Shown: positions 23 to 49,235 of the stretch, in pieces
Layout of the letters: each line of letters starts with the position of its first letter
Position numbering within the stretch: position 1 is the first letter of the stretch
Virus record (IMG/VR): IMGVR_UViG_3300030503_000315
Location: 62,001 to 126,000 of that record
Direction: 5' to 3' (one strand)
DNA: 64,000 bases
Position numbers and translations under genes: made by a program
Notes under the pieces: generated by a model
The model's input: only the letters and a program-made list of their open reading frames with translations
Database searches by the model: none
Told to the model about the DNA's origin: nothing

Positions 23-679
23 TCAACGTCCATATGGATGAAGTAGCTTGAGCTGTTTCTCTCGCTCCTTCACATACTGTTCCGTGGAAATAAATTTGTG
101 ATTCGACCACCCTGTCATGACCTGAACATTGTGTATGGGTACATTCACTATATCCAGGATAACTTCCTGTTGAGAATCTCGGAACTCTAATCCTTCCGAG
201 AAGTATTTTCTTTGATCGTTGAAGTGTTCAATCCAGGCACACCAGGATTTATCTTTCCAAATAGAATCAACATCCAGGATGATGTCGGAATGTTTTGGTT
301 TTATGGTAAGGAGAACTGCACTGGAATCATCTCCTGCGTCACCCATGGAGTTGCTAAAAAAGTAATCACCCATGAATTCGCGAATAACCTTCATGTCCTT
401 TGTCCAGGACGAAGGTTTCTTTGCTCCGACCATCTTGTTCTCAATACACTTCATGAGATTTTTATCAGATAAGGCAATCACTCGATAGAGAGTGCCAGAG
501 TACTGTCTGAATTTTGCTGGCCAGGGTTGCTTTTTGAGTTTCTTGGCTTCACCGGGTAGCGCACTATTTTGCCACTCGCCCAAGGTCTCTACCATATCCT
601 CGGTAGGACCCGCTTCACCTTTCGCCATCATCAGGTGTTGCATCCTGCTTAGACGCGTCGAAGAATTTATTTTAATCAT
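23..679 (-). CDS. Putative ADP-ribosyltransferase (R-S-E class)
   Basis: Motifs in ART order: LYRVI (Arg), SSWT (Ser-x-Thr), QQEVIL (Glu); shares the MIKINS leader with the neighbouring ARTs. Confidence 0.6.
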   Translation of the reverse strand: MIKINSSTRLSRMQHLMMAKGEAGPTEDMVETLGEWQNSALPGEAKKLKKQPWPAKFRQYSGTLYRVIALSDKNLMKCIENKMVGAKKPSSWTKDMKVIREFMGDYFFSNSMGDAGDDSSAVLLTIKPKHSDIILDVDSIWKDKSWCAWIEHFNDQRKYFSEGLEFRDSQQEVILDIVNVPIHNVQVMTGWSNHKFISTEQYVKEREKQLKLLHPYGR

Positions 680-686
680 TTCTACC

Positions 687-1433
687 TCAGCTGCTATACT
701 CGACAGTTATGATACGAGGCTGACCTCGCTTACCTGGTTTAATATCCACTACTTTATACTTAGCATCCTTGTTCAACAGAATCTCATTTTCCGAACGGGT
801 TGCGTGCCCACCTTTCTTGAAAACGGAAAGACTATCGACGGAGATTGCTTTGCTACCCTTCGGCACTTGAATCTTCAGTATCGTTGGATTATCACCACGA
901 GAAAAGTTGTCCGCGGTGTCCTTGTCAGTTGACGTCGATCCATATCCACGATCTTCAAAGGACTCGCCGACTTTCAGATCCTTGAACATATCCATTTCAG
1001 TTGCACCAACACCACGATAGACTTCAAGAGGTTCAGTTGTCTTGGCCTTATCGAATGCTTGTTCAACCAACTTCATTTCCTTTCTATCTGCTGCAGGAAT
1101 ATTCTTCCCCGCACGCAACGCCTTGTTAACCGATTGGTACATCACACCAGTATATTCTTTCAGCGCCTGCACTTCTTTGGGATCAAGTGTAACTGAAGCC
1201 GCTTTGTGTGCTGCTTTACCTTTGGCTACTTTCCCCGCAGGCTGCTCAACTTCAGGACTCGGTACCACTTTGGGTTTTGACTGTGGTTCTGCAACCCCTG
1301 TCTTTCCATACTTACTACGAGGATGTCTCTTTAAGTACTGCTCTTGCTTTTCCTTACTGAGGTTGTCCCACCATCCTGCATCTATCTCGAAGGCAGTAGC
1401 GATCAACCTCCGGACAGAATTGATCTTTATCAT
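687..1433 (-). CDS. VIP2/C3-exoenzyme-like ADP-ribosyltransferase
   Basis: ALKEYTG..Y.SVN..LR helix, EVYRG, GYGSTS and ENEILL motifs; N-terminal WWDNLSKEKQEQYLKRHPRSKY segment and a P/K-rich linker. Confidence 0.9.
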   Translation of the reverse strand: MIKINSVRRLIATAFEIDAGWWDNLSKEKQEQYLKRHPRSKYGKTGVAEPQSKPKVVPSPEVEQPAGKVAKGKAAHKAASVTLDPKEVQALKEYTGVMYQSVNKALRAGKNIPAADRKEMKLVEQAFDKAKTTEPLEVYRGVGATEMDMFKDLKVGESFEDRGYGSTSTDKDTADNFSRGDNPTILKIQVPKGSKAISVDSLSVFKKGGHATRSENEILLNKDAKYKVVDIKPGKRGQPRIITVEYSS

Positions 1434-1435
1434 AG

Positions 1436-2611
1436 CTAGCCCATATGTCGTTCTTGGTGTTCTTCAATCTCACGCTTAGACCAGTCCTCTGAATTGATAT
1501 TCAAAGCCTCACCTTTTGAGTGAACATACTTTGCCTCACCAACCTGGTTGTCTTTGGAGTCGATGAGCTGGACAACCCAACTACGCGCCCCTTTGTCATA
1601 CCAACGTTCGATTTTCCACCCTGCTGGTAGCTTTTTATCTACTGATATAGCAGCTGCCTGTACGGTGTCTTTACATTTCCTCAAAAAGAAACGTAGGGTA
1701 TTCGTTGAAGGCTTATCTTTAAGTAACCAGGTGATCCCTGGATGCAGTGGCTGTGGGAATTCATTTGGTAGAAACCACTTGTATCCTCCCGATTCTTCAT
1801 TGATCTGAGGTTCGAACTCATGAGGAACCAGAGCCACGTAGTTGTAGTAGACGAACGATTTCTTTTGATCGTTGAATGGTGTCAAGGGACGTAGCTTCAT
1901 CGGACCTTGGTAACCTGTCTCTTCTAAAATTTCCCTACGCAACGCCTGGACGATCTCCTCATTGCCATCTATTGATCCACCAAACTGACCATAGGTATTA
2001 GGCATGGCCGATGTCGAGGATCTTAGCTGAAGCAGGATACGTCCGGTGTCTTGAGCGATAATCAGAGCTCCGGTAGCTGCGTGATAACCACGAATACCAG
2101 GCACCCATTTTTCGTCCAGTTTATGTGCTTTGACGGAGTGGCCACCATGTTTTGACTTAAGATATTTTATGGCTGGACCATACTCAGGTGAGTCTAAAAG
2201 ATCATCCTGCTCACCATCCAACACCTCTTTTAGAATAGCTGGGTCATTTTCTATGTACCGCGCGTGCTCGTGCCAAGGCAAGTGTACCGCAATGATGTCC
2301 GAGGGCTTCACTTCGTCCTGAAGAACAAGCGGCTTATCCCAATTCCTCTTGGGTACTTGAAACTCAACAGTAGGGACTTCTCCAGGAGTACCGTAGAATC
2401 CCTTCTCATCCGCATAGATGCCACGAGGACCTTCAATCCCTTTAGCGTGACTCATTTGAACGCCATGCTTAAGAATAGAAGGCACGTTACTTAATTCCGT
2501 TTGATGGTAGAGCCTTACATAACCAGGTTTGATCTTCGAAGTACCTGGAAGTTCCGGAAGAGTATCGTGAGCGGTAGCTTTAAGTCGAAAGACTGAGTTT
2601 ATCTTCATCAC
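1436..2611 (-). CDS. H-Y-class ART-like domain fused to a Nudix hydrolase
   Basis: N-terminal LYHQT..NVPSILKHG...GIY resembles the His-Tyr ART core; intact Nudix box GGSIDGNEEIVQALRREILEETG. Confidence 0.75.
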   Translation of the reverse strand: MMKINSVFRLKATAHDTLPELPGTSKIKPGYVRLYHQTELSNVPSILKHGVQMSHAKGIEGPRGIYADEKGFYGTPGEVPTVEFQVPKRNWDKPLVLQDEVKPSDIIAVHLPWHEHARYIENDPAILKEVLDGEQDDLLDSPEYGPAIKYLKSKHGGHSVKAHKLDEKWVPGIRGYHAATGALIIAQDTGRILLQLRSSTSAMPNTYGQFGGSIDGNEEIVQALRREILEETGYQGPMKLRPLTPFNDQKKSFVYYNYVALVPHEFEPQINEESGGYKWFLPNEFPQPLHPGITWLLKDKPSTNTLRFFLRKCKDTVQAAAISVDKKLPAGWKIERWYDKGARSWVVQLIDSKDNQVGEAKYVHSKGEALNINSEDWSKREIEEHQERHMG

Positions 2612-4294
2612 TCATTCTTCCTTCATCTGATCGAATTTCTCAAGGTAGGCAGGGATTCTAAATCCCAAAGTCTGCCAGTACATGAGCTGTGCAGCGGGAT
2701 CGATGTATGCATTAAGAGCTGTTGTCCCGGTCACCTTGGTTCCTGAAGCTCCATTACGAACGTGGTTCAGAATCTTACCAACAGCTTCAGCCATCTTCTG
2801 GAACACTACCATAGCAGCCTTTTCGTCCTTAGGTGGTTTCTTCTCAAAGACTTCCTGCATAAGCTGTTGGAAGACGTGTGTTCCCTTAGCTGTACGCAGT
2901 TTGTGGACCGTAGTTCCGTTGGGAGCACCCATCGACTTGAACAATGCATTTACCTGTGTTCCAGTAACGCGAATCGGACGACCCGTAGGTTTAACGTAGG
3001 TGAATAGCGGGTCTTTAGCGGTCTTACCTTGTAGCATTTGAATGATTGCTGCAGCCACATACTTCTGGTTTGCATTTGCTTTCAAAATCTTGTGCACGGT
3101 ATTAACACCATCCTTACCTTTGTAGCGAAGGACGATGTTACCACCAGAATCGACCGAGGCATGCTTCACCTGGAGAGTGGATATCCCATATGTCGATTGA
3201 CCACCTGCTGCATTACCCATCGAACCAACACGAGCGGAAAACTCGTAGAGGATTTCCAGTTCAACAGCAGCAACGCAACGGATGTCCTGAGGATTGAATT
3301 TCCGGACCAGGTTGAACCACTTCTTCTGCATCGATTGCAATTTTGGCAACAGATCGGCTACCTTGCTAAACTTCTGCCTTGCCTGCGCCTTCTTGTAATC
3401 CATGGTGTAGAACGGAGCGCTACCTTGACCATCAGATTTGATTGCCAGGAATACGTAATCTGCACCACCGGGCTTGCCATACTTCGGGTTCATCTCAACC
3501 GAGGGGAAAGTGATAACGGAAGGGACGCCGTTAATCAGATGACCATCGTGAGTGTACATCCTAAGCAGATCATCTACCTGCCCAGTGAATCCAAGAGGAA
3601 GCATGTGATCGATACCATTCGCGTGCAGGAATGCCAGGAGCTCTTCGTACGGAACAGTCGAATGACCAGAGTTACGTACATAACTCACTGCTGCGTCTTT
3701 CCAAATCTGATTGTGTTCCCTGCGGTACAACAGATATTGCTTATACGCATCCGGCTTCAGGTCCTTGACCTGTTTTGCTTCATCTAGAGTAAGTGCAGTA
3801 TCGTCACGACCAACCAACTCGTACACAAGTTGTCGTAAGGATTCGCTGGTCTTCCTTTGTGTACCGACCTTTGGTGCCATGCGCTTGGAGATGTACGGGT
3901 TGTTCATCATACCAGCAAATTTCTCAATCTTCTTCAGGGCAATCTCTGAGTCGGTGCGTAGATATGTTATGAGAGCTTTGAGAATTTCCAACTCTCTTGA
4001 GGTATAGCGTTCGTTCGAACGGAATGATTGAAATTCCTGCTTGAGTTCCTCTCCGAGTAGCGCTAGCTGCTCTGCTTTCGAGCGTCCCGTCAACGCGGCA
4101 TTGAATGCATTGCGGAGGGCAGGCAATTCCTTGCCCCATTGGGCAATCACAGGCTTCTGCAGATGCTTGAGTTCTTGCTCGGTTTCTTCGTCCGGCCGGC
4201 GTTCAGCACCGTTGTCCTTGTAGTCTATACTCAAGGTGTAGAGGGCTTCCAGCAAGGAAACAAGCTGTGATGCAGTAACGAGGATGGGGTTCAT
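2612..4294 (-). CDS. DNA topoisomerase IB with long N-terminal extension
   Basis: Catalytic pentad in order: SARVG (R), YKGKDG (K), HKLRT (R), LNH (H), AYIDP (Tyr nucleophile). Confidence 0.88.
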   Translation of the reverse strand: MNPILVTASQLVSLLEALYTLSIDYKDNGAERRPDEETEQELKHLQKPVIAQWGKELPALRNAFNAALTGRSKAEQLALLGEELKQEFQSFRSNERYTSRELEILKALITYLRTDSEIALKKIEKFAGMMNNPYISKRMAPKVGTQRKTSESLRQLVYELVGRDDTALTLDEAKQVKDLKPDAYKQYLLYRREHNQIWKDAAVSYVRNSGHSTVPYEELLAFLHANGIDHMLPLGFTGQVDDLLRMYTHDGHLINGVPSVITFPSVEMNPKYGKPGGADYVFLAIKSDGQGSAPFYTMDYKKAQARQKFSKVADLLPKLQSMQKKWFNLVRKFNPQDIRCVAAVELEILYEFSARVGSMGNAAGGQSTYGISTLQVKHASVDSGGNIVLRYKGKDGVNTVHKILKANANQKYVAAAIIQMLQGKTAKDPLFTYVKPTGRPIRVTGTQVNALFKSMGAPNGTTVHKLRTAKGTHVFQQLMQEVFEKKPPKDEKAAMVVFQKMAEAVGKILNHVRNGASGTKVTGTTALNAYIDPAAQLMYWQTLGFRIPAYLEKFDQMKEE

Positions 4295-4399
4295 ATTGTG
4301 CCTTCTAATTCTGAATGACAGGATTCGATGGCATCAAATTGCATTCGAAACGACGCAGAGATGGAAAAAGACCACCCTTACTGCTGGTGGTCTTTTTGT

Positions 4400-4606
4400 T
4401 TACTCTTCCTCGTCTCCGTCCTCTTCTTCCGATTCCTCGCTTTGAATCTCATCAAGACGAGTATCTACTTCGTTAAGAAGATCGTCAACGTGATCCTTCA
4501 GCTCATCCAGATCGGAATAGAACAGTTCCAGTTCATCGTCCTCTGCGCTATCAAACAGTTTTGTCAACTGTTCCTTGATATCATCAATCGGCTTACTCAT
4601 CACCAA
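4400..4606 (-). CDS. Small highly acidic protein
   Basis: 68 aa, D/E-rich, overlaps the stop of the upstream gene. Confidence 0.6.
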   Translation of the reverse strand: MVMSKPIDDIKEQLTKLFDSAEDDELELFYSDLDELKDHVDDLLNEVDTRLDEIQSEESEEEDGDEEE

Positions 4607-5400
4607 GTCTCCACTTCATCTTCGCTACCATCGGTTAACATATCCATATCATCCCCGGTAAGAATGGAATCCATTGGGTCTTCAAGAACACTCATGACCA
4701 TACCTACTCGCTGCACCTTCTCTTCAAATTCTACAGACTCCTGATCCAGCTGTGGTCCACCAAACATGTTGGCATACATTGCTTCTTCCGGCGGGATGAA
4801 ATTCGGACCCTTCAGGAATTTTCCGTTAGCGTCTTTAATAGGATTACCATCTTCACCCAGCTTGGTGAAATTCGAACCCATAATGATGGCCAGGTTCTGT
4901 TCGTGCGGTAGGCCAAACTTCAGCGCTTCAGAACGAATGTAGACATTCATATCACCAAGCCAGTCGGCAAGCATTACCAGGATCTGACGATCCACCTCAT
5001 CTATGCCACCATCTTCCCACGCGATAGAAAGGATGTCTGATATCTCAATTGCGCGTTTCGGTTCGATACCAGCTGTGATGGCGTCATGTTGAAGATTCAA
5101 TCCGTCCCACACCGTCGCGCTTTCTGTGCTGAGTGCGATCTCACGCTTGTCCAACACGAATTCGATTTCCTTACCTTCCTTCATTTCCTTCTCGAGTGTC
5201 TTGAGAAAGCCTTGCACACGCTTCAGCGGTTGCTCGTTAAGGTGTTCGGCAGAGAGCGTCGGAGCCGAGTTGATTGGCAGTTCGTAAATCTCATTCTGCT
5301 TCTTGATCGCCCACAGAAAGTACGACGACGCGGGTACGCCGGACTCTTCAAACTCATTCGAGAGACGACCAACCAGGCTTGTGAATTTATCCAGATCCAT
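4600..5400 (-). CDS. MazG/PRA-PH-like all-alpha NTP pyrophosphohydrolase
   Basis: EKEMKE and LADWLGD acidic motifs plus the family tail SNFTKLGEDGNPIKDANGKFLKGPNF; long insertion between the two motifs. Confidence 0.78.
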   Translation of the reverse strand: MDLDKFTSLVGRLSNEFEESGVPASSYFLWAIKKQNEIYELPINSAPTLSAEHLNEQPLKRVQGFLKTLEKEMKEGKEIEFVLDKREIALSTESATVWDGLNLQHDAITAGIEPKRAIEISDILSIAWEDGGIDEVDRQILVMLADWLGDMNVYIRSEALKFGLPHEQNLAIIMGSNFTKLGEDGNPIKDANGKFLKGPNFIPPEEAMYANMFGGPQLDQESVEFEEKVQRVGMVMSVLEDPMDSILTGDDMDMLTDGSEDEVETW

Positions 5401-5439
5401 AATTCCTCATACAGTGATGTTAGGTTTGAACTACCCTAA

Positions 5440-5448
5440 TATTTACTG
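5440..5448 (-). promoter_or_regulatory. Class B promoter-like motif, variant (CAGTAAATA)
   Basis: One mismatch to the TAGTAAATA motif, intergenic, followed by a TTAGG/CCTAA hairpin. Confidence 0.4.
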
Positions 5449-5457
5449 TATGAGAAA

Positions 5458-6329
5458 CTACCAATCAATACTCGTATGCACCTGTAAATATCTGCCACGA
5501 TCAACCAAAGGTATTTCAAATAGCCAGACAAGAATATCCGTCTCATCCAAGGATGTACAGACAACTTTTTCCTCAAACTTATCAACCAAGATATATTGAT
5601 CCGGATAATTCCTCTTCCACTCTTCATGCCGATCAAGCATATCCGCGATAGGATGCGCGAACCACTTAGGGCTATTGTTCTCTACATCCAAAGCTGCAGC
5701 TTTAACCTGTACGGCGGTAAGTATGGAGATCACAGTTCTCAAATCTCCAACTGAGACCTGCGTAGAGGCACCAGACCCCATGAAGTGAAGAGCGATGTCT
5801 CCGTCCTCCATGGCATCTTCAGCTAACTCTTGCTGCGCCTCGATCATTGCCCACCAGGTGGCGAAGCTTGAGATAGCTTTATGCTCTTCATCTGTAAGAG
5901 TAAGAAGATTCACTAGTCTATCATTTTTAACTTTGGTCATTGCTACTCCTTGAGGTTGAATGCGTGCATGAGGATGAACCTTGCTTCCTCGATCAACTTC
6001 TCTTTCTCTTCAATGTATCCCTCGTCCCCCCAGAAATGTAGATCGAATTCTTCCTCAGTCCACTTGGGATATTCTTTAAACTTTAACGCTTTTGCCGACT
6101 TCTCCGCCATCTTTTTGATATGGGACAGCATCGTCACATCTTCTTCCAGGAAATAGAGGGGACGGTGTGCACCTAGGTTTTCCCAACCTACGCACGGTTG
6201 GAAGTACCAACCAGAGTGTGAGTTATGGTTTATGTATCCCGCGAACTTATGTACCCACTTTTCTATAGGAGCTCTACGCGGGGGAGGTGGATCTGGTTTC
6301 CACTTTGACTCCGGAGGAATTCTAACCAT
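5458..6329 (-). other. Two hypothetical CDS (5458..5940, 5943..6329)
   Basis: Tiled minus-strand ORFs with SD-like sequences; no motif recognised. Confidence 0.65.
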
Positions 6330-6339
6330 CTAACTCTCC

Positions 6340-6753
6340 TTATGCTCGAGTATTCCACGAGGCATCCGCATCTTCCTGCGACTTGTATCCGAAGATACCC
6401 ATAGGGCAAACGTGTCGGGTGTTGTCCTTTAAGGACCACTCTTCATTCTTCACCCATCCACTGCACATGACAGAATAGCCTTCCATGTCACCATCGGGAT
6501 AACGTTCAGCCTCTGCTGCACAGAACGGACATGCCTTAAGACCAGTCTTCGGATTGACAACATTTGCCAGATCACTTAAAGTTCGTCCTTCGCAGAAGAA
6601 CGCGAACCCTATCTGCAAATCAAGCCTTTCGTAATCGCCGTCCTCGTCTTTTACAAAATCACTATCCGTATTGCCGTGGTTAGCTTTACACACTTCTTCG
6701 AACATCTTGTGGAGCATCTCGTCCTTCAGCTGCTCAATGGTCTTGTCAGTCAT
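6340..6753 (-). CDS. Lar-family (restriction alleviation)-like Zn-finger protein
   Basis: LKACPFC...YSVMC...C...ASWNTRA pattern typical of Lar-like C-terminal domains. Confidence 0.65.
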   Translation of the reverse strand: MTDKTIEQLKDEMLHKMFEEVCKANHGNTDSDFVKDEDGDYERLDLQIGFAFFCEGRTLSDLANVVNPKTGLKACPFCAAEAERYPDGDMEGYSVMCSGWVKNEEWSLKDNTRHVCPMGIFGYKSQEDADASWNTRA

Positions 6754-6791
6754 TCTTCGTCCTCTAGATATTTGTAGTAAAGCTTCTGGCC

Positions 6792-6983
6792 TTAGTATTC
6801 TTCATAGGGATTGAAGCCTCCAGTGAGGCGGCGATCGCGATATCCATTTGCCCAGCCACGTTCCCAATCCCTGTAGTCTTGTTGATGTTGACTTGGGATG
6901 TAAGGGCATGCCCACATAGCTTTCCCATTCTTACCTGCCTCGTACCCAAGCTCATACGGCGACTTTGGTCTTTCAACCAACAT
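6792..6983 (-). CDS. Rmf (ribosome modulation factor)-like small protein
   Basis: Restarted at ATG 6983 (GAGGA SD); YELGYEAGKNG..CPY...WERGW pattern. Confidence 0.55.
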   Translation of the reverse strand: MLVERPKSPYELGYEAGKNGKAMWACPYIPSQHQQDYRDWERGWANGYRDRRLTGGFNPYEEY

Positions 6984-8411
6984 GATCCTCTCCCTCGAAT
7001 TTAGCATACTCACCATCCTCCCACTTACCACGTATGAAGGCGGCGCAGTCAAGAAGATACTCTCGGCGCTTCTCATGATAATGTGCGGCCTTCGGCATAT
7101 CAGAAGCATCCGCACAAGTCTCCTGATATGAGTGATAGTCGGCCAGAGCCTCTAAAGCTCCCGGGAGTTCCGTTAACATCTTGAACTCTGTAGCAGAGAA
7201 TTCAGGTCGTTTCATCACCTACCTCCATATTTCCTTTGAACACGTATCCATACTTTTCCTTGACGCAGTGTTCATCACACCACGCCTGGGCTTCCTCTAG
7301 CTTCCGAATGACTTCGTGTAACCATCCAGTTGATGCACTGCCCTCAGTTTTCACGCTCCAGTTACCATCATCTTCGCAAACGATGGTGAACACAACATGT
7401 GGATCTTCGGCACCTCTCCAACCGAGCGTAACACCGAAACAGGATCCAAAGAATCCGATCTCGTATTTGTGCTCGGAATAATCCTTCCGAAACCAATCCC
7501 ACCCAATGATGTACGGCTTCTTCTGTTCTTCATTCATTTCTATAACTCTCCTCGCGGCTGAACAACACCAAGCCGTTCGAGTATGCCTCGATCCGTGTCG
7601 GTGATATTTACCCCTTCCAGGAAAGACTGTTGCTTGAACTCTTTCATGTCAAGATGACGATTGACACCCTGATTCGCGATATAGTAGGCGAGCTCCATGG
7701 CATGCTCTACCAGCCACTTGGGATTTGCATGACCTAGGGCATAACGTGCAAACCAGTGCAGCAACTCTACTACCCTCTCATGTTGAACATCCTGAGCACC
7801 GTTTATCTCTTCCGGCTTCATGCAACCACTAAGCAGTATTGCCACTTGCTCTTCACTCAAACCAAAATTATCCATTTTAGTCTCCAGGTGGATGAATGTC
7901 GTGAAAGTACGCAGCTTCGAGGACTTTGCGTAATCCTTCCGGCATGTTCCAACCTTCCAGTACGACACCGACGGTGTACTTCATTCTCTGAAGTTTCAGC
8001 AACTCGTCCTTAGGAGCTTCCAGAAGTTCTTTCACTTCGTCCCGGGTAAACGTAAAGCTGTGAGTCATCTTTGACATCAACAACTCGTGTTTCAGTTTCT
8101 CAATCCAACTGAGATTATCTCTCATCTTCTTTGTCCTTCAATAGTTTCTGAAGTTCTTCCTTGTCCCATTCTATGCCCGTGATTTCATCACTGATCCAGT
8201 CAAGTGATTCTTCTAGCCTATGCATATTTCGGATTAGTATCCTTTCCTCGTAAAGCCCACGGCCACGATACGCTTCATCAAGATCCAGGTCGAGATGCTT
8301 CTTGATGGCATCTAAACGTTCCACCTTCACAAGTACCCAACCTTCCGGAATGTCACTCATCTTTCCTCCCAAGATCAAGCGTCTTGTAAACCGTGGATTC
8401 ATCCGAGGCAA
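6973..8411 (-). other. Run of small hypothetical CDS (6973..7218, 7202..7537, 7540..7968, ~7965..8125, 8115..8411)
   Basis: Contiguous tiling with stop/start overlaps. Confidence 0.6.
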
Positions 8412-8604
8412 ACTTTGAGATCATCCGGGCAATTCGTGCAGCTTCATCTGCAGGAATCGTGATACCTTGCTTACCGTGCTGCCACTCTGTTACTTTCTTT
8501 GTCTTATACATCTGACGCAAGGATATAAAGTTAGCGCCATTGATCTCGACAGCTTCAATACGAATTGCTTTTGTGTCGGTTAGTTCAAATGTTTTCTTAG
8601 ACAT
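8353..8604 (-). CDS. PC4/YdbC-like ssDNA-binding protein
   Basis: IRIEAVEINGANFISLRQMY...WQHGKQGITIP matches the PC4 fold pattern; start at ATG 8604. Confidence 0.72.
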   Translation of the reverse strand: MSKKTFELTDTKAIRIEAVEINGANFISLRQMYKTKKVTEWQHGKQGITIPADEAARIARMISKFASDESTVYKTLDLGRKDE

Positions 8605-9113
8605 ACTTTTGACCCCGGATCTTTTTCCATCCACTACCACTTTGGTTTTGAATCAAGGATGGGATTGATTGTCTAAAAGCTTCCTCGACATCATTGCAAA
8701 ACTGCAACCAAACATTATCTCGGAATCGAGCGTACACCGGAGTACCCCATCCCGGGATGTCCCGAGCGTATATTCCACTGGAATTGGGATTTCTACCCAC
8801 CTGCCACTCTTCATACTCTTTGTCGTTCTCAACGGAATGAGAAGTAACCTTTACGTTCCTAGACATAGGTCTCTCCTTTGATCTTTCGCCAAGGCGTGTT
8901 GGCACTATCCTGCCAGGTGCTTTTTACCTTAGTATTTCTAGCTAGTTCAACCTCAAAGTAGGCTATACACCAAAATCTTCCAGTCCACCTACTATAACAT
9001 TTACTTGACTCACCAAGAAGATCGCGTTCATAGACGCCTGTCTCTGTAGGTAGTCCTGTCTGCCATCCATCATCAAGGATACTATGACTAGTCACCCGAA
9101 TATTCTTCATCAT
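8597..9113 (-). other. Tandem paralogous hypothetical pair (8597..8866, 8859..9113)
   Basis: Shared (K/R)N(V/I)(K/R)VTSHS...WQ.G.P...G(I/V)Y.RD...W(K/R)KI(R/K)G..YV. Confidence 0.75.
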
Positions 9114-9591
9114 AATCTTCGTGTCTTTTAAGAATTGATAGTCCCGAGAACTTTGTGAATGATTCAATAGCCTTAGCATCGTTAACATAGGGGTAATTAG
9201 CATAACCATCAAACGCACGCTTCGCGCTACATAGATGGTTGTGATCCATCGTTCCTAGAACGTATGTAAAGCCCGATTCCGTCAAACCATAGATAGGACT
9301 ATCATACTCCTGCATCTCACCTCTAGGTGGAGACCAAGTCCTACGTATGGTTCCTATCACTTGCAACAGGCCCAGACGGACGAGCACGCGACAGCAGCTT
9401 GAAACACCAAGCGTCCAATTTCTACTACTACGTGCTTTGAACGATTGGCGGAAAACTGGGAGACACGTCTTCACTATGTCGCGGGTCTGGCGTCCTCTGG
9501 TTTTTAAACTCAGGGGAACGAATACAAAGGACGCCAGGATGATTCTATGCTGCATCGTCAAATCGTTTATTGTCAGTCGCTTGTGAGACAC
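9088..9591 (-). CDS. Possible winged-helix DNA-binding protein
   Basis: CRVLVRLGLL...YGLTESG resembles a wHTH recognition helix plus wing. Confidence 0.4.
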   Translation of the reverse strand: MSHKRLTINDLTMQHRIILASFVFVPLSLKTRGRQTRDIVKTCLPVFRQSFKARSSRNWTLGVSSCCRVLVRLGLLQVIGTIRRTWSPPRGEMQEYDSPIYGLTESGFTYVLGTMDHNHLCSAKRAFDGYANYPYVNDAKAIESFTKFSGLSILKRHEDYDEEYSGD

Positions 9592-11329
9592 GTCTTTCTA
9601 TCTCCGAAAAATCCATCTCTAGGGAAATGAACCTCACCTCTGGTGTCTTGCTAGATCGCATAATCCGACCCTTACTCTGAAAATCATCAAGCAAAGAGTT
9701 GTGCTTAGTCTGGTTAAGACGACCTGTTGGTGAGCAGGGAACTATGAAGTTCCAGCAATCCTCGTACAACCTATTTGTTCCATATTGTTGTTCCAGCTTA
9801 TGTATCATGCCCACCCAGTCGATAGGAATGTCGACCAGGTGAGACTCAACCTTTACCTTCTTTCTCATCTTTCACCTCCTCAGGTTTTTCATCTATCGGA
9901 TAGGACATGACCATTCCGAATAGCGCTAGGAACATCATCCACCATGGTCGAGCAAAGCACATGTAAGAACATAGAACGATAGTTATTACAATGTGCCACC
10001 GTTGATCGCTATCCCTCGCCTTTATCCACGCTATAAAGGAGGTCAAGCGTATCAGCAGGAGGAACCGAGAAACCATTGTCGGCCTTGTAGCCAAGTTTGA
10101 ATCGGATTGCTTTGTCACCGTAGAGCTCCTTGCTTTTCTTTAGATAACCGAAGATCGGTCGTGCGACGGGCGGGCGAAAAACGTCAGGTGTTTTCAACCA
10201 GCGGATGTAGCTATGTAGATTCAGGCAATCTTTCAGAATCGTCTCAGTCTCTATGATGTACGCACCCATTGCATGTCGAGACACTCTCTCTGCGAAGAAC
10301 CGATAGACTTCATCCGTATGGATTATCGCTACATTGCCTTTCATGTCAACCATTAGAATAGTTCTTTCTTTGCTCGCATTCTTTACCTCGTTGATTCCGT
10401 TCGTGTCATTCATGTCACACCTCTACTTAATAACTCAGAGATCATGTGTTGATTCTTCGGACCGTACTGGCCCTTTTCTAAACAACGGATAGCCAAATCA
10501 ACACATAACGCTTCGTCCTTTACCTTTCTTTCGACTGCCACTAGCTGCTTGCAGTCACGCCCCGCGTAGCTATCCGCTACGTGATATGCTTTCTTATACT
10601 CAGGACTTATGATCCAATAAGTCCGGTCAATCGACGTATGCTGCAAGGTCGACTCAATCATCACAACCACTGTACCACGTTGTAGATCAAACAGTCTATC
10701 TTTCAACACACCTCGATGCCATGTTTTCATTCGTCTCTCCCTAATTTATCTAAGATGTATTTCACGTTCAAGTGTGACTTGCAACGAACAATCTGTTTCA
10801 TGAAAGAAATCGTCACAGCCGCATACAGGGCAGACCGTCCAATTAGCTGCACCATTTTCGTTCAACACCTGTGCCAGCTCCCCGCAATCCTCCGCAAAAT
10901 ACAGAACCTTGTAATCTTCGATACTAAGAATTATATTCATTTCCTGTCCTATCGTGCCATGAAGTCCAATGTTTCCTTGATCTGCTGTGGCTTAGGTTGT
11001 TCTGCATCGTGGGGTCGAGCCATGAAAAGACGATGCCCACCTTCCGCAATCTTCGGCAGAATCTCTTTCAAGATTCCTCGCAGTCCAGGATCATACTCAT
11101 CCACGATGAGTATGTGTGGTTGCGGTTTGGAGTCTAACCACATCTCAAGGTGCTGCAACGTGCGATAGTGGATGTGGGCAATATCAACCATGCCCAAATC
11201 AAGCGCGGCTTCTTCCCATTCGTGGGATTCCAACATCCGGCAAATAAGCAGCCACGGCAACCTCATCTCGTCGTCTTTTATGGATGATTCGATATTTTTC
11301 AGAACGACAATCTTGTTTTCATGATTCAT
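9545..11329 (-). other. Run of small hypothetical CDS (9545..9868, 9846..10118 membrane, 10009..10413, 10410..10730, 10746..10940, 10949..11329)
   Basis: Tiled minus-strand ORFs with GGAG SDs. Confidence 0.6.
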
Positions 11330-18843: not shown

Positions 18844-19155
18844 TTATTCCTTGTCCTTCTCTTTTTTGATCTTTTTCTGCTTCGGCAACTTTAGCCGCAC
18901 GCAGATTACCTGGTTGTTGATCTTACGGAATACGTCCGATTTATCTTTGTCGAGGTAATACTCATGCGAAACTGAGTCGACTACCAACTTCACATTCTCA
19001 TGCGGACCCCCAATACCCTGTAGTGTTGTGAATGTTACTTCCTGACCAACGATGGGTAAAACATCTGGCTCTAACGTCATCAAGATTTGATCTTCCCACA
19101 ACCATGTCACCTGACAGTGAATCATAGTTTGTACCTCTTTTGGAATTGTTCCCAT
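18844..19155 (-). CDS. Hypothetical protein
   Basis: ORF coupled to the ligase stop. Confidence 0.6.
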   Translation of the reverse strand: MGTIPKEVQTMIHCQVTWLWEDQILMTLEPDVLPIVGQEVTFTTLQGIGGPHENVKLVVDSVSHEYYLDKDKSDVFRKINNQVICVRLKLPKQKKIKKEKDKE

Positions 19156-21008
19156 GTCATTGCACGATCCCCAGCCTTCGCTACCTTCGTTGATGCCTTA
19201 CCACCTTCCTTATAGAGAAGGACCGTAGTCTTACTTGAGAACGATGAAGCAACTTCGCCACCATCCATCTCCACTAGTGCTTCTTCCTTTTTATCTCTGT
19301 AACCAGTCCACACAACTGTCACGCCTGCAAGTTTCCCTGCCTTCGCCTTCTTAACCGTAGGTAGTGATCCGTCCACCGACAACGTTTTCCGATAGGGTTC
19401 AAACCACTTCTTGAAGAAGATCAAGCCCTCAATCAAAGCTCGCGTCGTCTTATCTGAGAATCCTTTGATTGCAAGAATTGCTTGCGAGTTCCACTTACCG
19501 AGTAATAAATCACTCATCGAAATCCCTGCATCCTCCAACAACTTCAACTTGCGTTCACCGATGCCGTTCTCGAAACATCCAGATGCAACCATCAACTTCT
19601 TCAGATTGATTTGCCTACTCAGTACTCGATGAAGTTCCTCAAGTATCTTGATCTTCAGATTGTCACCCAACTTGGCATTTTTGATGCCAGACTTTCCCCA
19701 GTCGAGTGTCTTGCAGCTCCCAAGCTCGATATAGTTGTACAGGCCGATGTAACCTACATCATACAATTTTTCGATTGTCTTCTCTGCCAGGAATTCGATT
19801 CCAAGTGTCGTCAGGAAGTGATGAATCTTCTGTACCCGCGTTGCTTTGTCCTCTTCTGCTGCGTAGAAGAACCGACCACGCAACTCGTACTCACCCGGTG
19901 GACCCTTGAACTTTGCTTTCTTCACCACACCAACGATCTTCGGGATAACACCACCCGAACGCAATACCTTGAGTATTGCGCCTCGGCCGACGCCCATATC
20001 CTTCATCCATCCCGGATTGTGCGCAGTCACATAAGTGACTGTAACTCCGTCCATCACCGTCGGCTTGATTCGAATCTTGCATGACCAACGATTCAGTCGT
20101 GTCTTCTCCCAGATTTCCTCTAGCGCTTCTACTTCCGCTGCACTTTCTTCGTCATTCAACTTGAACGCGATCACTTCCTTTGGCTTGTCTGCGCTGGCGT
20201 ACTTCATCACCCAATTGGAAGGACCTCGCACCGTGCCATCGATCTCGTACAGCGATACTTTACGACGAATCTCGAGAAACTCCTTATGATCCTCGGCGTT
20301 GAACTCAAGTTCCGTAACAATGTGATCTACTACTTGATGTCCCCACTCCATTGCATCTTGCAACCCGGAGGACAGTGCCCTTCCATACACACCAAGGACA
20401 ACCATATCGACATGCTTCAACGCTTCGTGCTGTTCCTTCTTGTTGAAGATACCGTTTACCAGATTACGTGCATTATCATACTTAGATGACCAGTATTTCT
20501 GGAACACTCTCTTCTGCATCACACCTTCAACACGAAACACGACACGATTCCGTGCCGAAATACGTTCTGGAATTCGTCCGAGCTTAACCAGCCATGGTAT
20601 GAAGAATGATATATCGCCGCCATTCGTTCCATCACCCCGGGTGATCAATCTCACAGGTTCACCGTGGTGGTAGATCAACTGAAGACTTGTGCCGTCCAGC
20701 TTGTCCATGTCGATCCAGTAGACCACCTTTCTACTGCTGGAACGTTTATAGAACTTCGTCACGTCCTCCGGATACATCTTGTTCAAACTAGGCATGAACT
20801 CTTCGAGAGGAACCTCGGTCTTCTTGTTCGCGACCTTAACACCCGTCTTCTTCAACTCTTTCCACTTCGGATCAATTCTCTTGATCTCATCTTCCAGCGA
20901 ATCGAACATTGCATCGGTCATGACAGGTTGACCGTTGTAGTAAGCTTCCTTAGCCTTCACGTACTTCTTCTTCGCAGTCTCGATATTGGAGATCCCGATA
21001 GCCATCAT
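19122..21008 (-). CDS. ligA: NAD+-dependent DNA ligase
   Basis: Domain Ia AYYNGQPVMTDAMFD, KLDG adenylation motif, IDGTV, OB domain with GGVIPKI, HhH, C-terminal BRCT (VVWTG); no Cys4 zinc finger. Confidence 0.92.
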   Translation of the reverse strand: MMAIGISNIETAKKKYVKAKEAYYNGQPVMTDAMFDSLEDEIKRIDPKWKELKKTGVKVANKKTEVPLEEFMPSLNKMYPEDVTKFYKRSSSRKVVYWIDMDKLDGTSLQLIYHHGEPVRLITRGDGTNGGDISFFIPWLVKLGRIPERISARNRVVFRVEGVMQKRVFQKYWSSKYDNARNLVNGIFNKKEQHEALKHVDMVVLGVYGRALSSGLQDAMEWGHQVVDHIVTELEFNAEDHKEFLEIRRKVSLYEIDGTVRGPSNWVMKYASADKPKEVIAFKLNDEESAAEVEALEEIWEKTRLNRWSCKIRIKPTVMDGVTVTYVTAHNPGWMKDMGVGRGAILKVLRSGGVIPKIVGVVKKAKFKGPPGEYELRGRFFYAAEEDKATRVQKIHHFLTTLGIEFLAEKTIEKLYDVGYIGLYNYIELGSCKTLDWGKSGIKNAKLGDNLKIKILEELHRVLSRQINLKKLMVASGCFENGIGERKLKLLEDAGISMSDLLLGKWNSQAILAIKGFSDKTTRALIEGLIFFKKWFEPYRKTLSVDGSLPTVKKAKAGKLAGVTVVWTGYRDKKEEALVEMDGGEVASSFSSKTTVLLYKEGGKASTKVAKAGDRAMTWEQFQKRYKL

Positions 21009-22034
21009 TCTTCCCCACAGTATAAACAAGTGTACTCGTATCTACGAGGGCTCCCGCATGTCTCGCATGGTACTACCCGGATGGCATAGGTCTCGCGCAA
21101 ATTCTTCTCTCGCTTCCTATATAGTTTACCATCCTGCTTGATCTTACGCGGACTGCGTTTCGCTTCCATCTGCATCCTCCTCTGGTGCGCACAATGTTGC
21201 AAATGCATCTGGTAGATTTTGCTCCTCCAACTGATCCCACTGAACCTCAGTCATTTCCAAACACCGACAATCCTCGGCGCGCATCAACCAGTCAGCCCAG
21301 TAGATAGTGTCGGCTTTCTTGAATTCTGGCAGGAGGAACGCGTTATCTTCCACAATAGCTTTCTCTATTGCTTCGAACTTCGTGGGATCATAAACGTAGA
21401 TATGGTAATGATCTCTCAGACGCTCTTCGGTGCAGTCAACCCACGATACGATCGCCTTCCGCCCATCCGGCAATGTATGAATCCACATGAGTGGACCATC
21501 ATAGTAGTAGTACAGCAAATCTACGTCTGTATCTGAACTTGCATGAATATCACCCGCAATAGCGGGGTCAACGGGAATTCCACGTAAAGGAATCATTTTT
21601 CTTCCTTGTCTTCGATGAGTTCAAGTTCGAACTCAGAGTAGTAACATGATATGGCGCCTCCATCAGCTAGTACCCGATACGGGTACAGGTCATCCTTTTC
21701 ATCGACGGATACGACGGTGCCTTCGCCTTGTGCCTGTGGCGGCAAGAATTTAACCCTGTCCTTCAGAGCGAACTTCATATTAATCCTGCCCGCCGCATGC
21801 GGCTTCAGCAGATACTGCGCGAGCATCGGCATCCTGTTGTGCTGCATCATGCGCTCTACGAACAAGATTGCATGCCTGTTGTCCTTCACCGTTGAAGGTC
21901 AGAAGACGAACGATTTCCACCAGTGCATTCTTCAGCTGTTGAGATCCGTGGTTGGGTCCCCACTCTTCATTCGATTCATACCCAGTGTCAGTCTCGATAC
22001 TGACCTTTACAAAACTTTTCACGATCTTGCTCAT
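21005..22034 (-). other. Hypothetical CDS run (21005..21208 with CxxC..CxxC, 21144..21596, 21593..~21785, 21780..22034)
   Basis: Tiled ORFs. Confidence 0.6.
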
Positions 22035-36816: not shown

Positions 36817-37995
36817 TTACGCCCTAGGAATAACCAAATGTTGTCCGACTTGAATTAGATCAGGGTTCGGCAGATTGTTACGCGATTGAATCTTTCGATA
36901 CGCACCAGACGATCCCATCTGTGCTGCTGCAATCTTACCCAACGTATCACCTGGCTTCACGACATACGTTTGCTCACCAGACGTTGCTGCAGTTGTCACA
37001 GCCTTGTCGCTAACGAAGTATTTGATAAGCAGCGCTTTGTAATCGTCCGATGCACGTACGTGAGTAATGGCCGTGTTCAACGCCGTCAGCAAGGATTCAT
37101 CAGTCGAACGCACGCCAATCTTGTACGCGATATCAGAACCATCCAACTTCGTGACTGCGAACTTCAGGTCAGTTCCCTTTACCGACGATACCGCAAAGGG
37201 ATAATCGTAGATGAAGGCATCGACCGTACTGTTATCGATTGACTTATCGATAAAATGCGGATCTGCATCGTCTACAACTTGTGCAGCTGCAAGCGGGAAC
37301 TGGCGGTGCATGAATGCCTTAACGTCCGGGTCACCCTTCAGGATGCCGATGCGAACATCCGGATCATTCAGTTGTGCTGGTGTCTTGATTTTCGACGACG
37401 GACCAACGATCAACGAATAACCGAAATCCGTAACGTATGGTGCGCTATACTCGATTCCCTGCACCGGTTGATCGTCCTGATATGTCAGGCCATCCATCGC
37501 AATATCAACGGTGTAGTTGCCGTTCGCATCCTTCACCAACAACTGTTTTGGCACCTGTGCATATTCCGGCACCTCGTGATTCATGTCAACACGAACCGCA
37601 CCACAGCGCGCCGCGAACACTGGATCCTGGAACAGCAGCTTCGCTAAGTCGACGTTGAACCCTGAAATCTGTCCGCCTTCATCGTTGTAGAATGGCTCGC
37701 TTGGATTCTCCACAGACACACGAACAACACAATTGCTCAGGATCGACTTCAGGGTATCAGACGATGCCACGTAGGGTTGGGCTGGTGCTTGCTGTACTAC
37801 AGGTGAAGACTGCGGTGCGGGTGTTTGATTCGTCGCGGACTGACCGAAATCTGTTTGTTGCTGTGCAACCTGAACTTGTTGTGTTGCTGCCTTGTCGAGC
37901 AAACCGAAATGCTTCACTCCTACATACGCTCCTGTACCGATTACCGCAACACCAAAAAGGATGAGGAGATTCTTACCTAAACGCGTGGCTGCCAT
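36817..37995 (-). CDS. Membrane-anchored amino-acid-type solute-binding protein (SBP family 3) fused to LysM
   Basis: N-terminal TM; PFY...GFNVDLAK, YSAPY, DAFIYDYP motifs; C-terminal YVVKPGDTLGKIA...N...PDLIQVGQ.L.IP LysM. Confidence 0.88.
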   Translation of the reverse strand: MAATRLGKNLLILFGVAVIGTGAYVGVKHFGLLDKAATQQVQVAQQQTDFGQSATNQTPAPQSSPVVQQAPAQPYVASSDTLKSILSNCVVRVSVENPSEPFYNDEGGQISGFNVDLAKLLFQDPVFAARCGAVRVDMNHEVPEYAQVPKQLLVKDANGNYTVDIAMDGLTYQDDQPVQGIEYSAPYVTDFGYSLIVGPSSKIKTPAQLNDPDVRIGILKGDPDVKAFMHRQFPLAAAQVVDDADPHFIDKSIDNSTVDAFIYDYPFAVSSVKGTDLKFAVTKLDGSDIAYKIGVRSTDESLLTALNTAITHVRASDDYKALLIKYFVSDKAVTTAATSGEQTYVVKPGDTLGKIAAAQMGSSGAYRKIQSRNNLPNPDLIQVGQHLVIPRA

Positions 37996-38958: not shown

Positions 38959-39266
38959 TGCTGTTTCCCTTGATTGAGGAGGAACTGCACACCACGATTT
39001 GCTGATGGGTCAGTCTGCTGCACTACAGGAGCCGGCTGCTCAGCTTGAGCTTCTGCTGGCTGTTGAATAACAACAGGCTGTGCGACCTGAGGACTTGGCG
39101 GAGCCGGAGTGTCATCCTCCTGCGTTTGCGCAGGTTGGATGTCCACCACGGGTTCCTGCTTCTTGTCGAATACACCTTTTTGCTTTGCTGCCCAGTATCC
39201 ACCTCCACCAACCACACCAACAATTACCAGAATGAGGAGATTCTTACCTAACCTTGTAGCTGCCAT
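38955..39266 (-). CDS. Single-TM Q/P-rich periplasmic protein
   Basis: MAATRLGKNLLIL anchor identical to that of 36817..37995. Confidence 0.78.
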   Translation of the reverse strand: MAATRLGKNLLILVIVGVVGGGGYWAAKQKGVFDKKQEPVVDIQPAQTQEDDTPAPPSPQVAQPVVIQQPAEAQAEQPAPVVQQTDPSANRGVQFLLNQGKQQ

Positions 39267-48785: not shown

Positions 48786-49235
48786 CTAATGCTTCAGTAT
48801 TTGAAATCCCTGGCTAACTTTGCCTATGTTTTCTTCAATCACAGCCATTGAGAACTCTTTATAGAAAAAATCCATCCGAACTTCGGCCTGGTCTTCAGAT
48901 ATAGATCTTGGTTTCAGCTCATCATTCACCTGAATAACGAACTCCATAGTTTTCTGAGTAGACCCACTACGATGCAACTCTTCCAGAAGAAATTTGTAAA
49001 TATCCTCCCACACCAATTTCTTGCCTTTAATCTTTGAGGAGAAGACTCTCATTCTATTGAACCAGGTTAAAATCTCTTTCTCCCACCCTCTGGTGTAAGT
49101 TGAGGTAGGGAACAACATTATCTTGAACGCATGAGTGTGCACCTGATCACCCAACTCCTGAATCTTGTTCTTGGCAAACTTTCGGTCGTATGCCATCGCG
49201 GTCAGCTTCAACCGCTTTACTGAATTCGTTTTCAT
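48786..49235 (-). CDS. Hypothetical protein (DUF29-like pattern) carrying the KxNSVxRLxxTA leader
   Basis: MKTNSVKRLKLTA N-terminus; HAFKI...RGWEKEI. Confidence 0.55.
   Translation of the reverse strand: MKTNSVKRLKLTAMAYDRKFAKNKIQELGDQVHTHAFKIMLFPTSTYTRGWEKEILTWFNRMRVFSSKIKGKKLVWEDIYKFLLEELHRSGSTQKTMEFVIQVNDELKPRSISEDQAEVRMDFFYKEFSMAVIEENIGKVSQGFQILKH

Follow-up and report, generated by a model that had tools for sequence, protein, structure and literature searches.

A short peptide at the N-terminus of otherwise unrelated proteins was identified in an uncultured jumbo phage, where the genes carrying it cluster with the genes for the phage head. The peptide, here called the leader, is 12-14 residues long and was found at the N-terminus of 15 proteins encoded in 98.8 kb of the same phage. 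Judged from sequence, it is most probably a capsid-targeting or propeptide leader specific to the lineage of the phiRSL1-like jumbo phages, a reading to which we give a probability of about two in three. In its role it is best read as analogous to the T4 capsid-targeting sequence (CTS), to which it is not homologous in sequence. The window, meaning the whole stretch of 64 kb that was analysed, is part of an uncultured relative of the Ralstonia jumbo phage phiRSL1.

Occurrence and genomic distribution of the leader

Four minus-strand open reading frames of the window (Table 1) share the start M(x)K(I/T)NSxxRL. The N-termini read MIKINSSTRLS for protein 1, MIKINSVRRLIATA for protein 2, MMKINSVFRLKATA for protein 3 (1436..2611, when read from an upstream GTG) and MKTNSVKRLKLTA for the distant protein of 149 residues. 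A first, sequence-only reading of the window had described a shared N-terminus on three tandem genes and a fourth, distant carrier, and all of them are present as described. The motif K[IT]NS occurs exactly four times in the six frames of the window, always at residues 2-6 of these four proteins. The bodies behind the leader had been called unrelated; likewise, no mutual similarity was detectable among them here, since BLASTP aligned the leader alone.

Table 1. Positions of the leader-bearing proteins, their domains and the adjacent topoisomerase gene in the window.
Feature	Coordinates	Strand	Remarks
Leader-bearing protein 1, 218 aa	23..679	-	probably a divergent ADP-ribosyltransferase fold of R-S-(Q)xE type
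Leader of protein 1	638..679	-	MIKINSSTRLSRMQ
Leader-bearing protein 2, 248 aa	687..1433	-	R-S-ExE ADP-ribosyltransferase, predicted
Predicted ADP-ribosyltransferase catalytic domain, protein 2 aa 72-235	729..1220	-	Pfam envelope
Leader of protein 2	1392..1433	-	MIKINSVRRLIATA
Leader-bearing protein 3, 390 aa from ATG 2608	1436..2608	-	probable H-Y-E-type ART-like + predicted Nudix
Predicted Nudix hydrolase domain, protein 3 aa 176-290	1739..2083	-	PF00293
Probable H-Y-E-type ART-like domain, protein 3 aa 15-160	2129..2566	-	family invariants, fold matches
Leader of protein 3	2567..2608	-	MKINSVFRLKATAH
Topoisomerase IB	2612..4294	-	PF01028 at 6e-19; 65% identity to phiRSL1 ORF108
Leader-bearing protein, 149 aa	48786..49235	-	leader MKTNSVKRLKLTAM

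The PSSM scan which the sequence-only reading had proposed was carried out with a matrix of 14 residues and a threshold of at least 12 bits on the 98.8 kb from the window's phage. It returned 16 matches, compared to 0.4 expected from codon shuffles, and 13 of the 15 seeds scored at least 10 when left out of the matrix. In the window, protein 3 reached 42 bits (39 in the leave-one-out test), protein 2 reached 36 (29), the 149-residue protein 32 (17) and protein 1, whose leader lacks the A-T portion of the consensus, 27 (10). The consensus is K-(I/L)-N-(A/S)-A-x-R-L-x-A-(T/S/A), often followed by an acidic residue. The motif originally proposed, M-x-K-(I/T)-N-S-V-x-R-L-x-x-T-A, was drawn too narrowly. 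The start of topoisomerase IB (MNPILVTA), which had also been brought into connection with the leader, scored -15 or lower and was dropped from the family. Two further candidates, the N-terminus of the capsid protein (..VAATE) and that of the ORF134 homologue (MAINTKKKRVLAAE), resemble the leader by eye only and were rejected on negative PSSM scores.

The leader is kept throughout the phiRSL1-like clade. In 741 kb from relatives, 97 unique matches were identified, of which 96 fall on the gene strand and 82 within 8 residues of a start codon. Occasionally the motif is internal or C-terminal, as in homologues of ORF112 and ORF125, and it is repeated in tandem in a conserved protein of 478 residues. 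The internal and C-terminal copies would suit a cleavage or binding peptide, and not a strictly N-terminal signal.

Selection on the leader acts at the peptide level. Within one genome its invariant Arg is written in six codons and its invariant Leu in five, the codon is identical at just 35% of the identical leader residues, and the DNA upstream of the leader genes is unrelated (27% identity). The scrambled codons and the unrelated upstream DNA show that the leader is not an RNA element; a recent DNA duplication behind the shared N-termini was excluded by the same comparison.

Topoisomerase IB is the upstream neighbour of the leader genes in the same gene string, and at least 11 further leader genes of the same phage were found just outside the window, in the interval that topoisomerase IB and the major capsid gene enclose. 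When the same-phage contigs L011 and L040 are used for the head module, the stretch from topoisomerase IB to the major capsid protein counts 34 genes, 14 of them with the leader, compared to 1 of 81 elsewhere in the window (Fisher p = 4.8e-8). The leader genes of the head module flank those for the portal and the prohead protease, and between the genes for protease and capsid there is one for a putative ATPase. The protease was identified by phrog_18299 (6e-83); Pfam and PDB sequence searches gave no match for its family, and Atlas gave leads only, to the S78, S80 and S77 families. The pattern in phiRSL1 is alike, with the leader on ORF109, 111, 120, 123, 124, 126, 127 and 133.

Most carriers are small head-module proteins with no recognisable effector function, and when ten other carriers were scanned against Pfam and PHROG, the matches were confined to the protease and the putative ATPase. 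Two carriers are outliers: the 149-residue protein is encoded far from the head genes, and the gene at 14777 of L040 lies between those for tail sheath and tail tube. The sole family match of the 149-residue protein is phrog_31822, a family with no assigned function, and a tblastn search of isolate phages found no homologue. A DNA search of the locus against near and distant isolate phages was likewise without a match, and no tRNA was detected in a scan of the window. The original GenBank record of phiRSL1 holds no proteomic notes, and reviews and related papers list neither virion proteins nor their N-termini for the phiRSL1-like clade. Phages of this group also carry NAD salvage genes.

Enzymes encoded behind the leader

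For the three tandem genes, two ADP-ribosyltransferases (ARTs) of the R-S-E class and one of the H-Y class joined to a Nudix domain had been proposed. The R-S-E assignment of protein 2 and the Nudix domain can be regarded as firm predictions, while protein 1 and the H-Y domain are assigned only as probable.

In protein 2, the leader is followed by a WWDxLSxxxQxxYLxxHPxSKY module, a Pro/Lys-rich linker and the ART domain. The protein matched PF03496 (ADPrib_exo_Tox) at 2e-28 (99.5 bits, cut-off 23.4), and in addition PF01129 (4e-6) and the PHROG Alt-like ART (2.4e-7); its PDB sequence matches include Vip2, ExoS/ExoT and C3. R140 and S166-T-S168 do not vary among 20 homologues, and E215-x-E217 is conserved to at least 90%. 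On this sequence evidence protein 2 is firmly predicted to be an R-S-ExE ART. Every homologue retains a leader, and some carry two in tandem.

In protein 3 the leader precedes a probable H-Y-E-type ART-like domain and then the Nudix domain, with a further small domain at the C-terminus. A GTG at 2611 abuts the stop codon of the topoisomerase; read from the ATG at 2608, the protein begins with MKINS..., matching phiRSL1 ORF109 (MKINSAFRLLVTS), and by this sequence comparison the ATG is the likelier start. The Nudix domain is firmly predicted, with 54.8 bits to PF00293 (cut-off 21.1) and the Nudix box G-x5-E-x7-R-E-I-x-E-E-x-G in the translation. The domain in front of it found no match in Pfam and belongs to a family of 38 stand-alone proteins, in which H35 (in RLYHQT), Y72 and E82 (in TVEF) are invariant and Y65 is conserved to at least 90%. 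Its best 50 Foldseek matches in the PDB were all Tpt1/KptA or PARP10/14/15, at weak scores (E at least 0.04, TM about 0.3). From the invariant residues and the modelled fold, this domain is probably an ART of the H-Y-E type. The AF2 model of the N-terminal domain has a pLDDT of 84.5, with values below 50 for residues 1-13, so that in the model the leader resembles an unstructured appendage. ORF109 of phiRSL1 consists of the leader and Nudix only and aligns to residues 159-309 of protein 3. Compared to ORF109, protein 3 has a domain of 145 residues inserted behind the leader, which stays at the extreme N-terminus.

For protein 1, no match was obtained in Pfam or PHROG, nor in Pfam for 38 aligned homologues. 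An exhaustive search gave 66 remote homologues; R66 and E172 are invariant in the family, while W92 (in the consensus SSWT, 90-93) and Q170 are conserved to at least 90%. The AF2 model (pLDDT 92) found ART toxin A subunits as its best Foldseek matches in the PDB, although weakly (E 0.026-0.6, TM about 0.3). Atlas TM-scores to ADPrib_exo_Tox clusters are 0.5-0.55. Sequence conservation and model together suggest that protein 1 is probably a divergent R-S-QxE ART. Its homologues P0061 and P0062 have kept a leader.

Exchange of leaders and comparison to known systems

The strongest evidence for a capsid-targeting-like leader is provided, at the sequence level, by the swapping of cargo between leaders of different phage lineages. 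In T4, the peptide MKTYQEFIAE has been proven experimentally to be a capsid-targeting sequence, whose cargo stays in the head and is then ejected (PMC8442874). Stand-alone homologues of the N-terminal domain of protein 3 begin with MKTFKKFLSE, MKTFIQFISE or MKSFKQYLNE, and homologues of protein 1 with MISFKQFLSE or MISFKEFLSE. These homologues lie in tandem arrays whose neighbours have the same leader, once beside a gene of the T4 gp15 family. The contigs belong to uncultured phages mostly without PHROG matches, and the resemblance of their leaders to the CTS is one of sequence only. A third leader dialect, found at the start of ten tandem genes on another contig, reads M(K/R)LxL(K/R)A(S/T); among these ten is a homologue of the protein 3 N-terminal domain. 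No useful match resulted when the neighbouring genes on contigs L054 and L055 were scanned against PHROG, and tblastn searches of isolate phages with the leader-swapped homologues P0005 and P0066 were without a match. The R-S-E class itself matches the PHROG family of Alt-like ARTs from T4 and also the ART ends found on head morphogenesis proteins of the MuF type; in other phages this domain class is often capsid cargo.

To our knowledge, T4 and, for a single protein, P1 are the only phages with demonstrated capsid-targeting leaders. The leader resembles the T4 CTS in being a short N-terminal peptide on otherwise unrelated, fast-evolving proteins, and tandem gene arrays, a prohead protease encoded nearby and putative anti-host enzymes among the cargo are common to both. 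In contrast to T4, the phage is of the phiRSL1-like jumbo myovirus lineage and has many more carriers, interleaved with head genes, the motif is occasionally internal, and the system is known from sequence alone. The leader has no sequence similarity to MKTYQEFIAE, and no (L/I)xE site of the gp21 protease is evident in its consensus. T4 Alt is an ADP-ribosyltransferase which is packaged in the virion and injected with the DNA. Both Alt and, by prediction, protein 2 are R-S-E ARTs of the exoenzyme class; however, their match is confined to the catalytic region, and protein 2 is much smaller with a different N-terminal architecture.

For P1 DarB, the N-terminal packaging signal comprises the first 30 residues (PMC9024508). 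Here, too, an N-terminal signal is proposed or used to bring an anti-host enzyme into a myovirus head; however, the Dar proteins have no common consensus, whereas a clear one is present on about 15 proteins per genome in the phage described here. The MuF (SPP1 gp7-like) proteins with C-terminal ART toxin domains contain the same domain class and are capsid-delivered, but there the toxin is covalently fused to a structural domain associated with the portal and does not depend on a short leader. Encapsulin cargo-loading peptides are short and position-tolerant, and bring diverse enzymes into an HK97-fold shell; these systems are non-viral with another peptide consensus, and the likeness is one of analogy only.

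Proposed function and alternative explanations

For the leader proteins, we infer a course of events that runs from docking and cleavage, through presence in the virion, to injection and enzyme activity. The cargo proteins would be synthesised alongside the head proteins, and the exposed peptide of 12-14 residues, K-(I/L)-N-(A/S)-A-x-R-L-x-A-(T/S), would dock to a component of the assembling prohead, possibly its scaffold or core, its portal or the inner surface of its shell. The prohead protease would probably trim the leader near the A-(T/S)-(E/A/D) boundary, a guessed cleavage site. The mature enzymes would remain inside the DNA-filled head and enter the host together with the DNA. There, the two R-S-E-type ARTs and the H-Y-E-type ART-like/Nudix fusion might modify host targets or use up NAD-derived molecules, acting before any phage gene is expressed. 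The sequence-only reading had taken the leader as the mark of packaged first-strike effectors; the clustering at the head genes and the swaps with T4-CTS-like leaders speak indirectly for the packaging part of this claim, but most carriers are not recognisable effectors.

This last point agrees as well with a different explanation, which we consider unlikely but the most serious competitor: the motif might be a recognition or cleavage site of the prohead protease or an assembly tag on structural, scaffold or decoration proteins of the head, and its carriers might act in morphogenesis or be degraded and expelled like scaffold fragments, with no delivery to the host. The prevalence of small head-region proteins with no assigned function among the carriers, the internal motif in the ORF112 and ORF125 homologues, its tandem copies in the 478-residue protein and the frequent acidic residue after A-T would all fit such a site. 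However, ARTs and a Nudix domain have no obvious role in morphogenesis, the same cargo is found on T4-CTS-like leaders, with T4 cargo being retained and ejected, and this ART class is known as capsid-delivered cargo.

A regulatory peptide or mRNA feature with no link to the capsid, such as a shared translation-initiation region, an N-degron that times proteolysis or a tag bound by a phage chaperone or translocase, is highly improbable. It would account for the position at the extreme N-terminus, and the ATPase gene between the protease and capsid genes could be brought in its favour, but the scrambled codons and unrelated upstream DNA speak against it, and it fails to explain both the clustering at the portal, protease and capsid genes and the swapping of cargo with T4-CTS-like leaders. 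A Sec, Tat or lipoprotein export signal directing the enzymes to the envelope or medium, suggested by an A-T-A end superficially like an A-x-A signal-peptidase site, is effectively refuted by the sequence, since the hydrophobic core of a Sec/Tat signal peptide (roughly 10 residues or more, behind a basic N-region) was sought and found absent in all 15 leaders (maximal 10-residue Kyte-Doolittle mean of at most 1.33), which rules out a signal peptide, and since the leader has merely 12-14 polar or basic residues and many carriers run straight on into acidic soluble sequence.

A capsid-targeting function of the leader would have wider consequences. From the sequence comparisons, cargo domains appear to move between phage lineages through leader swaps. 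With a second clear consensus leader, used by jumbo phages of an unrelated clade, the loading of cargo by leaders would prove to be a general strategy, and candidate injected proteins could be listed from sequence, most of them with no assigned function and possibly directed against host defences. Two R-S-E ARTs, an H-Y-E ART-like domain and a Nudix domain would point to a NAD-centred first-strike chemistry in phiRSL1-like phages. More tentatively, and with the odds rather against it, the leader might be one of at least three interchangeable dialects (MKTFxxFLxE, KINAAxRLxAT and MRLxLRAT) in a general code by which large myoviruses load cargo and which tolerates different positions of the peptide. 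If so, the injected arsenal of an uncultured phage could be read from its genome, here about 15-20 proteins including three putative NAD-using enzymes, and the leader would offer a portable tag for loading proteins into the capsids of phages which infect plant-associated Burkholderiales.

Public gene calls omit the leader of protein 1, which they begin at Met13, and also those of phiRSL1 ORF111 and ORF126; the starts were corrected here.

Gene layout and spread of the leader

All genes in the window lie on the minus strand. Those for proteins 1, 2 and 3 follow topoisomerase IB in one string with gaps of 0-7 nt. For protein 3, a GTG at 2611 directly adjoins the topoisomerase stop codon, but the ATG at 2608, from which the protein begins MKINSVFRLKATA, is the likelier start, since the orthologue ORF109 of the Ralstonia jumbo phage phiRSL1 begins MKINSAFRLLVTS. 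A DNA-level search with the window gave no match among isolate phages. At the protein level, identities of 30-70% and partial synteny to phiRSL1 were identified, and judged from its proteins the phage is a distant phiRSL1 relative. The IMG/VR contig (IMGVR_UViG_3300030503_000315) has a length of 215 kb, of which the window covers positions 62001-126000. Two further loci of it, L011 and L040, extend beyond window position 1 and take in the portal, the prohead protease and the major capsid protein.

Topoisomerase IB string and further leader-bearing ORFs of the phage
Feature	Coordinates	Strand	Context	Start
Topoisomerase IB	2612..4294	minus	precedes three leader ORFs	
Protein 3 ORF	1436..2611 (ATG at 2608)	minus	three-gene string after topoisomerase IB	MKINSVFRLKATA
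Protein 2 ORF	687..1433	minus	three-gene string after topoisomerase IB	
Protein 1 ORF	23..679	minus	three-gene string after topoisomerase IB	
Further leader ORF			downstream of three genes	MMKINSALRLAST
Further leader ORF (478 aa)			downstream of three genes	MQIKAGSRLKATE
Further leader ORF			downstream of three genes	MIKINAARRLMAS
Further leader ORF			downstream of three genes	MKIATNAGARLLATS
Further leader ORF			downstream of three genes	MKINSATRLYATE
Further leader ORF			downstream of three genes	MKIQINATKRLLATE
Further leader ORF			downstream of three genes	MFQINAAFRLFAD
Further leader ORF			downstream of three genes	MIEINSASRLKATE
Further leader ORF			downstream of three genes	MRINSTHRLRAD
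Further leader ORF			downstream of three genes	MFKVNSTARLKATQ
Further leader ORF			downstream of three genes	MFKINSTARLKASE

The sequence-only reading had described a leader shared by three ORFs with unrelated bodies and by the gene 48786..49235. The N-termini agree with its quotation; a search of all six reading frames over the 64 kb located K[IT]NS four times, each at residues 2-6 of one of the three ORFs or of 48786..49235, and BLASTP between the bodies aligned the leader alone. Topoisomerase IB, whose start MNPILVTA had been listed alongside, does not carry the leader. The leader family is far bigger than was visible from the window, and its 478-aa member is kept in all relatives, with the leader present every time.

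With a 14-residue profile (PSSM; 15 seeds, threshold at least 12 bits, codon shuffles as null), 98.8 kb of this phage yielded 16 matches versus 0.4 expected. In leave-one-out scoring, 13 of the 15 seeds reached at least 10. An N-terminal leader is present in 14 of the 34 genes from topoisomerase IB to the capsid gene versus 1 of 81 in the remaining window (p = 4.8e-8). The head-region loci of relatives (741 kb) contain 97 unique matches, 96 of them on the gene strand and 82 at most 8 residues from a start codon, with the iterated consensus K-(I/L)-N-(A/S)-A-x-R-L-(L/K)-A-(T/A/S). A 491-aa leader-bearing protein (L040 14777..16252; MIEVKTKAWQRLLSST, 20 bits) is located outside the head genes, between tail sheath and tail tube.

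Enzymes and domains behind the leader

The proposal of three mechanistically different ADP-ribosyltransferases (ARTs) is plausible overall, being secure for protein 2 and probable for protein 1 and the N-domain of protein 3. Protein 2 is firmly predicted to be an R-S-ExE ART. It matches PF03496 (2e-28) and, among PDB sequences, Vip2, ExoS/T and C3; among its homologues R140 and S166-T-S168 never vary, and E215-x-E217 shows at least 90% conservation. It also matches the PHROG family of T4 Alt-like ARTs and, at their ART ends, MuF-type head proteins, which are capsid-delivered.

Protein 1, for which no Pfam match was obtained, is probably a divergent ART. In its family R66 and E172 are invariant, and W92 (consensus SSWT) and Q170 are at least 90% conserved. 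The best PDB fold matches of its AF2 model (pLDDT 92) are ART toxin subunits, with E values of only 0.026-0.6, and comparison to ART clusters gave Atlas TM values of 0.5-0.55. The N-domain of protein 3 is probably an H-Y-E-type ART, with H35, Y72 and E82 invariant and Y65 at least 90% conserved; the best 50 PDB fold matches of its model (pLDDT 84.5) are all Tpt1/KptA or PARP10/14/15, at weak scores (E at least 0.04, TM about 0.3). Protein 3 is also firmly predicted to contain a Nudix domain with an intact Nudix box.

The C-terminal part of protein 3 (window 1439..1814, aa 265-390) matches the Sonic hedgehog N-terminal domain over aa 265-377 in a PDB sequence search (E = 1.4e-4), a fold common to zinc D,D-peptidases. 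In the alignment, the His is retained and the Asp next to it in the hedgehog chain is replaced by Asn; aa 337-370 are matched by a small PHROG family (category "unknown function"). This part may represent a module of wall-binding or peptidase-like type in a protein that is putatively ejected. Directly after the leader, protein 2 (window 1308..1373, aa 21-42) and all its homologues carry a module (W)WDxLSxxxQxxY(L/V)KxHPxSKY. The same arrangement is seen in relatives and in a leader-bearing protein of 161 aa (L011 12750..13235) that is unrelated to protein 2. The module, which has no Pfam family, may be a common docking or DNA-binding element. Among the genes of the phage is one for an NAD-dependent DNA ligase (19122..21029), and NAD salvage genes lie near topoisomerase IB in phiRSL1 (ORF104, ORF106); a link to the NAD-consuming leader-bearing enzymes is possible.

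Function of the leader

The leader signal acts as a peptide and not as DNA. Within one genome, all six codons are in use for the invariant Arg and five for the invariant Leu, identical leader residues share the same codon in only 35%, and the 30 nt upstream of leader genes show 27% identity, which is the background level. When the N-domain of protein 3 is modelled with AF2, residues 1-13 stay below pLDDT 50, so that the leader looks like a flexible appendage there.

The 38 proteins of the protein 3 N-domain family, mostly stand-alone and of about 150 aa, have bodies 44-58% identical to this domain and N-termini in distinct classes. Several begin MKTFKKFLSE, MKTFIQFISE, MKSFKQYLNE, MKTFLEYLIE or MRAKDFVVE, and one begins MRLRLRATA. 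For T4, the capsid-targeting sequence (CTS) has been defined by experiment as MKTYQEFIAE; it loads foreign proteins by itself and is removed by a single head-protease cut (PMC8442874; PMC3012670). On one homologue's contig (L054), 3-4 nearby genes have similar T4-CTS-like leaders (MKTFKQFIL, MKSFKQILWE, and MKNFKDLLNE from an internal Met). On another, from an unrelated uncultured phage (L055; Logan contig SRR23971560_26220), ten tandem genes (179..10953) start with M(K/R)LxL(K/R)A(S/T), which is similar to the latter half of the phiRSL1-type leader and is read as a third, shorter leader dialect. For protein 1, 66 remote homologues were identified. Two carry phiRSL1-type leaders (MELNATFRLIAG, MLTNTIKRLQAS), and the remainder include starts MISFKQFLSE, MISFKEFLSE or VKSFKQFLIE; two contigs with such homologues (L056, L057) contain gene arrays with the start MI(S/T)FxxF(L/V)xE, one adjoining a T4 gp15-family gene.

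Since homologues of proteins 1 and 3 differ in their N-termini, the same cargo domains occur behind three lineage-specific leader types, one of which is a proven capsid-targeting kind. This cargo swapping, the strongest evidence available, suggests an equivalent role for the phiRSL1-type leader. Together with location and clade-wide conservation, it makes a capsid-packaging signal the best explanation, to which we give about two chances in three; the finding is read as a putative CTS-like system for which both the consensus and the phage clade are new. Its strongest competitor is a tag that serves maturation or assembly alone, in which case the carriers would not reach the next host. An export signal was ruled out, as hydropathy revealed no hydrophobic core in the leaders. 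The leader end L-K-A-T-E resembles by eye the conserved capsid-protein N-terminus ...V-A-A-T/S-E; the profile does not support this relationship, so the cleavage position is a guess.

Leader variants and further shared N-termini

In phiRSL1 the leader is more divergent (x-x-A-A-V-x-R-L-x-x-T). It is carried by ORF109, 111, 120, 123, 124, 126, 127 and 133, in ORF111 and ORF126 only with an alternative start, and is internal in ORF112 and ORF125. Annotated starts conceal or truncate the leader of ORF111 and ORF126, and public gene calls likewise skip that of protein 1, whose clustered protein begins at Met13 (window 643..679). The motif is not strictly N-terminal, since in a small conserved family (L009 5961..6191, L011 7880..8518, ORF112) it follows a 65-residue N-terminal domain and in the first of these is nearly C-terminal (..NAAQRLKATAEEQEKQEE-stop). 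Two tandem leaders occur in some carriers (protein 2 homologues P0042-P0048 and P0055; L011 11317..12753), for example, M..FLIRLEAAKK then ELNAAYRLLAD, or MQIKAGSRLKATE then KIKSNSIKRIRASLAE.

Elsewhere in the window, the N-terminal transmembrane segments of the neighbouring genes 36817..37995 and 38955..39266 are almost identical (MAATRLGKNLLIL...), and the first, longer gene codes for a solute-binding family 3 domain and LysM. The tandem paralogues 59659..60111 and 60108..60575 have similar N-termini (MKRDLPKMIDPSITAQQLFDYITHFLY, MKRELPTMITASMTDQQIFDYITHFLY), and both match one phiRSL1 region.
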